This document shows, in pieces, positions 61,989 to 64,000 of a stretch of 64,000 nt of DNA. The stretch is from Paramoeba atlantica (taxonomy: Eukaryota; Protista; Discosea). Within the stretch, counting starts at the first letter, position 1, and each line of letters starts with the position of its first letter. Where the stretch lies: contig CDRNVI010000012.1 in NCBI GenBank assembly GCA_977017575.1, forward strand, positions 1,054,001-1,118,000, given 5' to 3'. The notes below the pieces were generated by a model, which worked only from the letters and a program-made list of their open reading frames with translations, searched no databases and was not told the DNA's origin. Made by a program: the position numbers and the translations under genes.

Positions 61989-62546
61989 CAGATGGCTCCG
62001 CCTTCTGCTTTTTGCCTTGCTCCTCCTCCTTCCTCTACGATTTTGCAGATCACAAATGTAACAAGCCTTAGCGTTGATCAAATCACACTCGTTGACGGGT
62101 CAACCAAATGGCAGCCACTTCGTTGACAGTCGGGTTTATTGTCAACGAAGTGGCAGTCAATTGGTTGACCCGTCAAAGAAGTAGAGACGTACCCGGATAT
62201 TTTACTGTCAACGAAGTGGCAGCCAATTGGTTGACCCGTTCCCAATCCTAACATCTCCGTGGTTCCAAAGCAGATCCTAGGGCTTCTGTTGTTGTTGTTG
62301 AGCTCCTTACAGATTCCCATGCGAGGAAGTCGTCGTCGCTACATCGAAAAGGCAGAAGGCTCCGCCTTCTGATTTTTGCCTTGCTCTTCCTCCTTCCTCT
62401 ACGATTTTGCAGATCACAAATGTAACAAGCCTTAGCGTTGATCAAATCACACTCGTTAACGGGTCAAACAAATGGCAGCCACTTCGTTGACAGTCGGATT
62501 TACTGTCAACGAAGTGGCTGCCATTTGGTTGACCCGTCAACGAAGT
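61989..62546. repeat. ~190-bp direct duplication, each copy ending in a 40-bp palindrome
   Basis: Arms 62455-62494 / 62502-62541 (2 mismatches) and 62091-62130 / ~62138-62177, with a third half-arm near 62194-62239. Confidence 0.85.
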
Positions 62547-62860
62547 AGATACATAGCCAAATTTCCTCCCCCTTTTGTAGTTCCGCCTTCAACCCAACAG
62601 GTAGTAAATAATGCATTGGAATGATCATTCCCAGGGTTACATTTCACAGGTCGATGTGTAGGGGTGGCATTGTAATGGCATCACGTAAGATGTCGTGATC
62701 AATTTCTTACATATGATATGTTTTTTTATAGCTTTTCTAAAATGATCAATCATCTGGCATGCAAAATAAAAAAACTCTTTAAAAATATTTTGATGCAATA
62801 CGCAGCATTTAAGCAAAGTATACATTTGTTGGTTTCATTGACAAGTATATTTGATTCTCT

Positions 62861-63343
62861 ATGAACAGTACAACTGAAGCTGCACCGGCCTTTCATTCGT
62901 CCAGACGCGGAAAAGTTACAAAGAGTGCTTTGCCTCTAGAATATTCTCTTTCTCGTTTCATAGAAAAAGTAGAAAATCCGCATTCCTCGTGGAAGGCAGA
63001 TAACCCAGCATGTGAGTGGAAAGGAGTGAAATGCGATTTCGGAGGACATTTGCTTTGCTTGGCTTGGGCTAACTATGGCTTGCTTGGGACACTTCTCTGG
63101 CATCATACTCCTCCGATACGAGGAAACTTTTTTGTACATTGTAATTCTTTGCAAGAAAATGTGGATTTGAGTCAACTGGAAGATGCAACAGAGCTGTGCA
63201 ATTTAAGTCACAACAAATTTCAAGGTATGATAGATTTTACGCAATTGCCATCAGGCTTGGATTCACTGTGGCTTTCATACAATGAATTCTCTGGAAAAGT
63301 AGATCTTACAGCCTTGCCCACTGGACTTCGATTGTTATTATAG
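62861..63343 (+). pseudogene. LRR protein (copy 10), 3'-truncated in mid-repeat
   Basis: SRRGKVTKSALPLEYSL, NPACEWKGVKC. The ORF ends LPTGLRLLL*, and the TAG falls inside the SL-like sequence. Confidence 0.75.
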
Positions 63344-63369
63344 ATACAGTTTCTGTACCTTGTTGGTAC
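63336..63369 (+). ncRNA. Spliced-leader mini-exon fragment (nt ~10-39) plus GT donor
   Basis: TATTATAGATACAGTTTCTGTACCTTGTTG|GTAC contains the invariant CAGTTTCTGTAC and the exact 30-nt spacing to TTG|GT. The 5' AACTAACGC is absent. Confidence 0.8.
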
Positions 63370-63374
63370 ATTTT

Positions 63375-63917
63375 GCTAGCCCTTCCTTTCTTTTCCCGGA
63401 AACGGGCATATTCTTACTTTTAAATGCCCGTTTCCGGCTGACGGCTAGCTGGAACTGTCCCTCTTTGTCGCGGAAGTAGGGGACGCACTTCGCACTCTTC
63501 ACCCCTCCCCGGCTCGCTCTCTTCGAGTGAGCTTTCTTCCCTCCCCGGCTCTCTACTTCTCGTGCTTTCTTCTCCCGGGAGCTATGCGCCATGGTGGCCT
63601 CCTTTGAGGACCACTGGGCGTGCTACAGCGGGAGGACACGTTGTATGCGTGTATAGGGGATGCGAACTTGCACCCCTCTCTCCCTACATGCTGTAGCGAG
63701 TGCGGAGGTAACGGACCTCCCCATGATGCATCATGATCCACGATAGACCATCTGACAGCATGAACCCACGGCTTGACCGTGTTGCAGCATGAACCATGGC
63801 TATACGTGCTGTAGCATGACCGATGGGCGACTCGTCTCCTACCTCGCACTCCACTCTCTGTGTGACACCCGTCGTATGCGGGTCATGCGCTGATGGTATC
63901 GGCCGTCACACAGAGAG
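63375..63917 (+). ncRNA. Unidentified highly structured RNA or retroelement UTR
   Basis: Multiple perfect stems, two three-way junctions with a shared loop and three AGCATGA-hairpin repeats (see findings). Confidence 0.55.
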
Positions 63918-64000
63918 ACGTATCTCTGCGCCACGAGCGTATGATCATAACCCTTCAAAATAACGTATTTTGTGGAACGCTAATTTTAAATTTTCTTCCA

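Follow-up and report, generated by a model that had tools for sequence, protein, structure and literature searches.

SIDEs are non-autonomous derivatives of R2 that are mobilised by the R2 protein (Eickbush laboratory), the reverse transcriptase (RT) of which can perform end-to-end template jumping. Among the retrotransposons of trypanosomatids, CRE1 and SLACS are flanked by target duplications of 29 bp and 49 bp, respectively. CRE1/CRE2, SLACS and CZAR are specific for the spliced leader (SL) gene, and their insertion site lies between nucleotides 11 and 12 of the 39-nt mini-exon (PMC5814959, PMC12278014). RIME, NARTc and SIDER are the non-autonomous partners of ingi/L1Tc in trypanosomatids (PMC3820030, PMC8190864), and SL relics have been reported in retroposed genes of dinoflagellates (PMC5585692). 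Here, a window of 64,000 nucleotides (C12:1054001-1118000 of assembly G000, which comprises 45.7 Mb in 248 contigs) was analyzed together with an overlapping stretch of the same contig (L031, C12:1116001-1126000). We conclude with good confidence that positions 63340-63951 of this window are a very young copy of a SINE-like retroposon, designated family A, in a free-living-type kinetoplastid, and that this copy entered codon 5 of an LRR repeat (LxxLx^LxxNxF) in the sense direction, presumably by the mechanism proposed below.

The 5' part of the interrupted LRR gene, comprising an LRRNT_2 cap and the first repeats, occupies 62861..63339 on the + strand, as judged from the ORF list, Pfam and identity with contig C2. 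Its ORF (62861-63343), in which LRRNT_2 reaches 22.4 bits against a Pfam cut-off of 20.7, closes at a TAG (63341-63343) that is made by the junction itself, which bears out a preliminary description in that LRR coding stops in mid-repeat. Coding is broken at 63339 and is followed by the SL exon, from about nt 11 to the exon end, and then by GTAC; the letters (63343-63365, GATACAGTTTCTGTACCTTGTTG, with GTAC directly after at 63366-63369) also confirm that LRR coding leads directly into the exon fragment and GTAC. The 13-mer ACAGTTTCTGTAC had a single occurrence in the window, compared with a mean of 0.14 matches in shuffled sequences when one mismatch was allowed. The LRR frame is picked up again at 63952 (c ctt caa aat aac gta ttt tgt gga, LQNNVFCG), and the resumed gene (63952..64000, + strand; LQNNVFCGTL..., supported by frame analysis and C2 identity) contains a weak LRR_1 match and runs past the window end. 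On the + strand of the window, 27 LxxLxLxxNxFxG motifs were detected in at least eight clusters (480-59300), and this crowding suggests that the genome carries a very large plant-type LRR family. Just upstream of the interrupted gene, two near-perfect palindromes of ~90 nt each (62453-62544 and 62086-62180, with the core TGACGGGTCAACCAAATGGCAGCCACTTCGTTGACAG and its complement) match several miRNA-precursor models below the model cut-offs; these miRNA-like matches were the only ones obtained with Rfam in 62000-64000, and the palindrome pair is probably a small inverted-repeat element.

An uninterrupted LRR allele and target-site duplications had both been named in the preliminary description as informative, and the former was found on contig C2. 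This empty site was derived from separate searches of each flank, not from one flank-joining pattern. The 5' flank (63036-63338) matched C2:998433-998735, the 5' junction query (63150-63349) matched up to 63339, ending at C2:998736, and the 3' flank (L031:1953-2158, corresponding to 63953 onward) matched C2:998738-998943, all with 100% identity. As the two flanks are one base apart on C2 (C2:998736 vs C2:998738), the insert measures 612 nt (63340-63951) and has no target-site duplication, with a loss or change of at most one base; the single base between the flanks on C2 is probably the c of a TTC codon. The same locus is therefore filled on C12 and empty on C2. These two contigs seem to be colinear over a long distance, since pairs of RT hits with identical scores are found at a coordinate offset of ~180 kb, implying either homologous chromosomes or a large duplication. 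Judged from sequence comparison, the insertion is younger than the divergence of C2 and C12, which is nil across the 509 nt compared. The presence of filled and empty alleles in one assembly shows that the family is active now, and hence that the mechanism is testable in culture. A further feature of this region was noticed ~150 nt past the window end, where the C2 match to L031 halts at L031:2158, after ...CTCACAATG; the next ~100 nt (L031:2151-2255 region, GTGAGTCTCTAGTTCACC...) are repeated at 22 or more other places with 76-98% identity, and represent either a further insertion by which C12 and C2 differ or a shared module of intron-like or terminal type.

The sequence downstream of the exon is not particular to this locus, being common to 21 of the first 30 loci fetched. 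BLAST of L031 against the fetched loci revealed a common head of ~284 nt as well as longer matches of 611-633 nt to L001/L037 and L025/L038, and pairwise alignments resolved family A (~612 nt), family B (~580 nt) and family C (~585 nt), the bodies of which differ, along with A2 and D as further variants of the superfamily. In the window copy, which was delimited by comparison with L001/L037 and L025/L038 and by the C2 empty site (63340..63951, + strand, 612 nt, non-coding), the following parts of the + strand could be distinguished. The SL-exon fragment (63340..63365; SL nt 11-13, a 2-nt gap and nt 16-38, by comparison with the SL genes in L005, L017 and L018) is followed by GTAC (63366..63369), whose GTA equals the first three intron bases of the SL gene. 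Both belong to the head module (63340..63622, ~284 nt), which is common to families A, A2, B, C and partly D, as shown by BLAST against 20 loci, alignment and RNAalifold. The body (63623..63920) is specific for family A; among the fetched loci it was present only in L001/L037 and L025/L038, and a genome search with the 330-nt family A body detected at least 40 further copies with 98-100% identity. The 3' tail module (63921..63951) consists of ATC-TC, a 5-bp stem-loop (TGCGC ... GCGTA), T-GAT and a short A/C-rich end (CATAAC), and was recognized by comparison with the tails of A2, B, C and the LINE in L046.

The 3' ends of the element families generally follow the order ATC-TC, 5-bp stem-loop, T-GA(T) and then 6-10 A/C-rich bases, and the stem covaries between SINE families (TGCGC/GCGCA vs TGCAC/GTGCA). 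Poly(A) is absent from the 3' end of every family, and the CATAAC that closes the window copy contains no A run. No sense-strand ORF of 100 aa or more was found within the 612-nt element, and a short ORF on the opposite strand overlaps its head. An exact string search for the SL 23-mer plus GTAC yielded 108 occurrences in the genome. Taken together, many dispersed, near-identical, short non-coding copies with fixed ends are present, as expected for a SINE-like retroposon. It had been considered that dispersed SL fragments might have random breakpoints and no shared downstream sequence; instead, the head is common to the families, and the 5' ends are clustered in 18 of 21 copies.

Several copies have distinct histories. 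In two family B copies that lie on different contigs (L008 and L016; G000:C4:128700 and C9:631172), the flanks are identical and the end of the tail is doubled (CATGAACATCAAAA twice), a pattern that shows a segmental duplication carrying the element and slippage at its 3' end. An old, internally deleted superfamily copy with 76-85% identity was found on the - strand of an SL array spacer (L018:2181-2483, G000:C11), where it is embedded in the SL/5S repeat unit in reverse orientation, with a long (GA)n run in place of its head region. Family A copies also occur in enlarged 7.3-kb units of the C74 SL array.

Compared with the systems described above, the element resembles SIDEs in being short and non-coding, with a LINE carrying a restriction-enzyme-like endonuclease as its presumed mover, in its structured 5' module and its structured 3' end, the architecture of which is like that of the LINE tail over ~30 nt, and in that it inserts precisely, with variable bases at the 5' junction and at most a small target duplication. 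It differs from SIDEs in that it is not located in rDNA, its head begins with a piece of the host SL and has no match to HDV-like ribozymes, it seems to prefer a fixed LRR register, and it occurs in several families with different bodies. With CRE1/CRE2, SLACS and CZAR it shares a kinetoplastid host, a presumed partner LINE with RT, CCHC and restriction-enzyme-like endonuclease, and the SL breakpoint of the head, which is equivalent to their insertion site and leaves 28 exon nucleotides. In contrast to these retrotransposons, the window element is non-coding, lacks poly(A) and lies outside SL genes, its own 5' end is the downstream part of the SL, and the relatives of its partner are R2-type. 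RIME, NARTc and SIDER are likewise short non-coding kinetoplastid retroposons with a functional 5' module and, as may also be the case here, ends shared with an autonomous LINE; however, their Pr77 signature, poly(A), 12-bp target duplications and APE-type endonuclease have no counterpart in the window element. In dinoflagellates, DNA copies of the leader also precede retroposed sequence after reverse transcription of leader-bearing RNA, but the dinoflagellate cases are processed copies of genes, the leaders of which are whole or nested, whereas the leader of this mobile non-coding element is fixed, inherited and truncated.

The SL genes of the organism itself provide the appropriate reference, as had been suggested in the preliminary description. 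The true SL exon is AACTTTAACGATAAAGATACAGTTTCTGTACCTTGTTG, 38 nt in length if it starts at the first A, and the intron begins GTATGAGAAGC. These genes are organized in tandem arrays with 5S rRNA on the opposite strand; 34 of them, with CCCTTGTT context, are located on C3, C11, C24, C74, C97 and C107, and all have GGTAT. Not one of the 34 is interrupted, contains an element copy or has the SL exon followed by GTAC. Relative to this SL, the window copy retains nt 11-13 (ATA), is two A short at nt 14-15 and agrees at all 23 positions of nt 16-38. The complete 38-nt exon beginning AACTTTAACG is thus not in the window copy, from which nt 1-10 are absent and nt 14-15 deleted, in agreement with the earlier observation that 5' nucleotides of the SL are missing. 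Only GTA matches the SL intron after the exon, BLAST similarity ends at about base 30 of the element, and no tandem array, 5S rRNA or promoter-proximal SL context was found at the window site.

Other SL variants are present in the genome. Lone copies of SL RNA occur outside the arrays in L013 (G000:C6:27086-27125, - strand) and at C83:133026-133065. The L013 copy, which contains the SL from nt 3 (CTTTAACG) and the real intron to GGGGCTT, followed by AAAAAA, has the appearance of a retrocopy of complete, unspliced SL RNA, i.e., a true orphan SL pseudogene. Within the C11 array, variant SL genes (L018:1794-1823 and L019; G000:C11:3783 and 6676) have GTCCC for GTACC within a 297-bp local duplication, and further variant genes in an array (G000:C97:23409 and 25953) have AAAGGTACAG.

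Along the lines of the preliminary description, dispersed SL fragments were counted (the 108 exact heads and at least 528 others), and 5' ends were read in 21 copies. In 18 of the 21, the first element base is that of ATAAAG or lies one to two positions within this motif (SL nt 11-13), often with variable first two bases (AG, AC, GT, CT, CC or AA). The same start is observed where the head abuts the 3' end of another element, which implies that the RNA template itself terminates at SL nt 11-13. A longer SL is present in about nine copies of the head family, in two of which it is CTTTAACG, i.e., from nt 3, and none of these longer-SL copies includes sequence from upstream of the SL gene. They do not fit a simple inherited head beginning at nt 11 and call for an additional route, for example a switch of template to SL-bearing RNA or descent from an older full-SL form.

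The next base after the further SL 23-mers in the genome (at least 528) is never G and is mostly A; these 23-mers are joined to at least 15 different post-SL sequences (ATTT, ATTA, TTTC, CTTG, TGAC and others), mostly with the SL from nt 3. Three other SL-headed families begin with GT after the exon (GTTG, GTTT and GTTA). On C1, SL-headed copies recur every 5.09 kb on the - strand (G000:C1:9751, 14844, 19937 and 25029), like tandem elements. As unrelated SL-headed families also start with GT, a GT after the exon is not diagnostic of an SL gene. The earlier argument that the GT points to the SL gene as the source, and not to a trans-spliced mRNA, is therefore not supported, considering also that only GTA matches the intron and that sister copies have the SL from nt 3. 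In the DNA copies GTAC is preceded by TG, not AG, so the same junction cannot be re-spliced.

The head is strongly structured. When 18 heads were aligned, the SL part and GTAC were invariant, partly by construction since the sample was picked by SL pattern, and the remainder had a mean column identity of 80%. According to RNAalifold, GGTAC (63365-63369) pairs with GTACC of the exon (63355-63359) in a 5-bp hairpin, which is kept in 18 of 18 sequences (columns 18-22 with 28-32 of the consensus fold; one sequence via a G-U pair), and the exon segment ATACAGTTTC pairs with an internal GRAACTGT ~110 nt downstream. A long conserved head hairpin (63395..63437, + strand; CCCGGAAACGGGCAT ... ATGCCCGTTTCCGG) has 16 bp, in which the families differ by compensatory changes. 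At pair 66/104, C-G was found in 9 sequences and A-U in 7, at pair 60/112 the numbers were 11 for C-G and 6 for U-A, and a change from GCTAGCC/GGCTAGC (family A) to CCTTTAGT/ACTAAGG (family B) could be recognized by eye. Rfam gave no match to the head in 62000-64000 at E values up to 10, including HDV-like ribozymes, a kind that sequence models easily miss, and no tRNA, 7SL or 5S origin of the head was found. Together with the TTTT runs inside the head, the lack of an Rfam match implies that the element is not a classical Pol III SINE. The head was also examined as a functional mimic of SL RNA, which was rejected because the Sm-like site after GT differs between families (AUUUUG in A, AUUUUC in B and CUUUUU in C).

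The landing sites were examined in 19 copies with both ends readable. Six of them, belonging to families A, B and C, reside in LRR genes (L001, L011, L012, L022 (this window), L023 and L025), and each of them is inserted in the sense direction between positions 5 and 6 of LxxLxLxxNxF, which places it 9-11 nt upstream of the conserved Asn codon. Given the great abundance of LRR genes (27 + strand motifs in the window), location in an LRR gene is in itself unremarkable, and the case for targeting rests on the shared register, read at six sites. By our estimate, the chance of each further site having the same register and strand is ~0.02, which gives roughly 3e-9 for five further sites. These data suggest that one particular register of a protein-coding repeat can be favored by a retroelement. 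The non-LRR targets share only a weak TT^Y context. SINE-to-SINE tandems are also present, and resident heads were considered as a preferred target that would produce tail-to-head arrays, which was dropped as the main mode in view of only six strict genome matches.

Candidate partner LINEs were found in L046 (C30) and L020 (C11). Both encode an RT domain, a CCHC finger and a CCHC-RH(D)-E-RPD-x13-E endonuclease motif; the LINE in L046 contains a stop and a frameshift, and that in L020 is intact. The CCHC-RHD-E-RPD-E arrangement is the pattern of the SLACS/CRE-type restriction-enzyme-like endonuclease (PMC12857005). Nevertheless, the best solved relatives of the partner LINE are R2 proteins (1.7e-30 vs 1e-26 for L1 ORF2), its named homologues are R2-type, with none among them called SLACS, CRE or CZAR, and a protein-cluster look-up of its C-terminus returned only generic RT clusters. 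By its named relatives, the likely partner looks R2-like rather than CRE-like. The end of the L046 LINE (ATCTCTGTAG...CTACATGATAACATA) has the SINE-type tail architecture with a third version of the stem, so that tail stems covary across the SINE families and this LINE (GCGC/GCGC, GCAC/GTGC and GTAG/CTAC), and a related tail is present in the L020 LINE. The likeness between LINE and SINE tails is a ~30-nt motif of shared architecture, with no long alignment by BLAST. As read in the sequences of L046 and L020, the last base of the LINE abuts the ATAAAG or TATAAAG of a head. A LINE followed by a head was observed four times by coordinates (C30, C11, C47 and C54), with 1.49-2.06 kb from the RT domain to the downstream head and both on the same strand, as compared with ~0.05 such adjacencies expected by chance according to our estimate. 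By analogy with R2, the simplest reading of these joints would be that an R2-like RT jumped from the 5' end of the SINE RNA to the 3' end of its own LINE RNA.

Based on these observations, the following mechanism is proposed. The element would be transcribed, probably within read-through transcription, and its RNA would gain a 5' end at SL nt 11-13, possibly through self-cleavage or an internal start signal in the head. The 3' stem-loop may then be recognized by the RT of R2-like LINEs with a restriction-enzyme-like endonuclease, the RNA would be copied at the nick by target-primed reverse transcription, and the 5' end would be joined with zero to two odd bases. Sometimes the RT may jump to the 3' end of a LINE RNA or of another SINE RNA, which would generate tail-to-head tandems. 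The SL piece would thereby be passed on as DNA rather than renewed in each round, and it may have been kept because it is part of the folded head, pairing with its internal complement and with GTAC. The chances seem roughly even that this piece goes back to the trans-spliced RNA of an ancestor, as it does in the many other SL-headed elements present here.

Of the explanations put forward in the preliminary description, that of an SL-headed non-autonomous element inserted into the LRR gene is borne out by the 612-nt insert, its defined ends, its many copies and the empty site. An SL-exon fragment beside a broken LRR frame might suggest an orphan SL pseudogene or the joining of LRR cDNA to an SL target, and genuine whole-SL-RNA retrocopies do exist elsewhere (e.g., L013). 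However, what follows GTA is not the SL intron but the 284-nt head of ~108 copies, within a 612-nt repeat that has its own 3' end, and the idea that LRR mRNA was copied onto an SL target fails because the LRR frame continues after the insert between flanks that are contiguous on C2; both possibilities are refuted by these findings. An assembly chimera joining the LRR gene to a repeat also seems very improbable. Among the short Logan contigs of four public runs, neither junction was bridged (L031:800-2600) and the unique 5' flank was uncovered, holes of a kind that prove nothing, but both flanks belong to one LRR frame, lie one base apart on C2 with 100% identity, and the same type of junction in the same LRR register recurs at five other loci. 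Two further candidates were rejected: a retrocopy of a trans-spliced mRNA, since the SL begins at nt 11 instead of about nt 3, the body is a repeat without an ORF and there is no A tail, and an insertion of CRE/SLACS/CZAR itself, since the site is an LRR gene and there is neither an RT/endonuclease ORF nor poly(A).

The origin of the SL piece leaves more room for alternatives. One possible but less likely explanation is that it is a fossil of SL-gene targeting at the CRE/SLACS/CZAR position, where a staggered cut duplicated exon nt 11-38 plus GTA; this flank would have become the 5' end and let the cDNA anneal to SL targets, with SL specificity being lost later, so that the lineage would now land at other sites, such as LRR repeats. 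The head indeed keeps exactly 28 exon nucleotides, equal to the remainder past nt 11/12 of the 39-nt mini-exon, both cuts precede the conserved GATACAG core by 5 nt, GTA follows the exon as in the SL gene, and the partner LINEs have the endonuclease pattern given for SLACS/CRE (PMC12857005). To this extent the breakpoint does coincide with the SL-retroposon target, as was noted early on; against a link to such elements themselves, no copy lies in an SL gene and the likely partner LINE looks R2-like by its named relatives. Moreover, intron homology is limited to three bases, none of the 34 SL genes is interrupted or has GTAC, GT is likewise the start of three other SL-headed families, the hairpin with GTACC gives GTAC a separate, structural reason, the named relatives of the LINE are R2-type rather than SLACS, CRE or CZAR, and there are copies in which the SL extends from nt 3 and is preceded by non-SL sequence. 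Other retroelement copies that begin with SL nt 3 number in the hundreds here, and these, along with the roughly nine longer-SL copies of the same head family, would instead be compatible with each copy arising from freshly trans-spliced full-SL RNA, RT or 5' joining tending to halt near nt 11. This appears quite improbable, as the TG before GTAC does not allow re-splicing of the junction, other SL-headed families reach nt 3, so that the SL is no block to copying at nt 11, and ~90% of copies begin at nt 11-13 in all families and contexts, including tail-to-head joints. Of these origins, a trans-spliced ancestor with subsequent inheritance of the piece as DNA is rated highest, at roughly even odds.

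For this genome, the results imply that SL-like 23-mers are mostly retroelement ends and not SL genes (34 genes vs more than 630 other copies), which is relevant to annotation. The 5' end of a mobile element formed from a truncated host SL that has been folded into a conserved head appears to be a feature for which the searchable literature offers no published account, although such absence does not prove that none exists. A bolder view, which we consider doubtful, is that an R2/CRE-type lineage of a kinetoplastid switched its landing site from the SL gene to one codon register of LRR repeats, with the old SL target half surviving as the first 31 nt of the RNA within a self-processing 5' module. 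If true, the element would document a change of target at the molecular level and would be the first known example of a retroelement that homes to a repeat motif in protein-coding sequence. A preference for a fixed register would make the very large LRR family a moving target for insertional loss and rearrangement.
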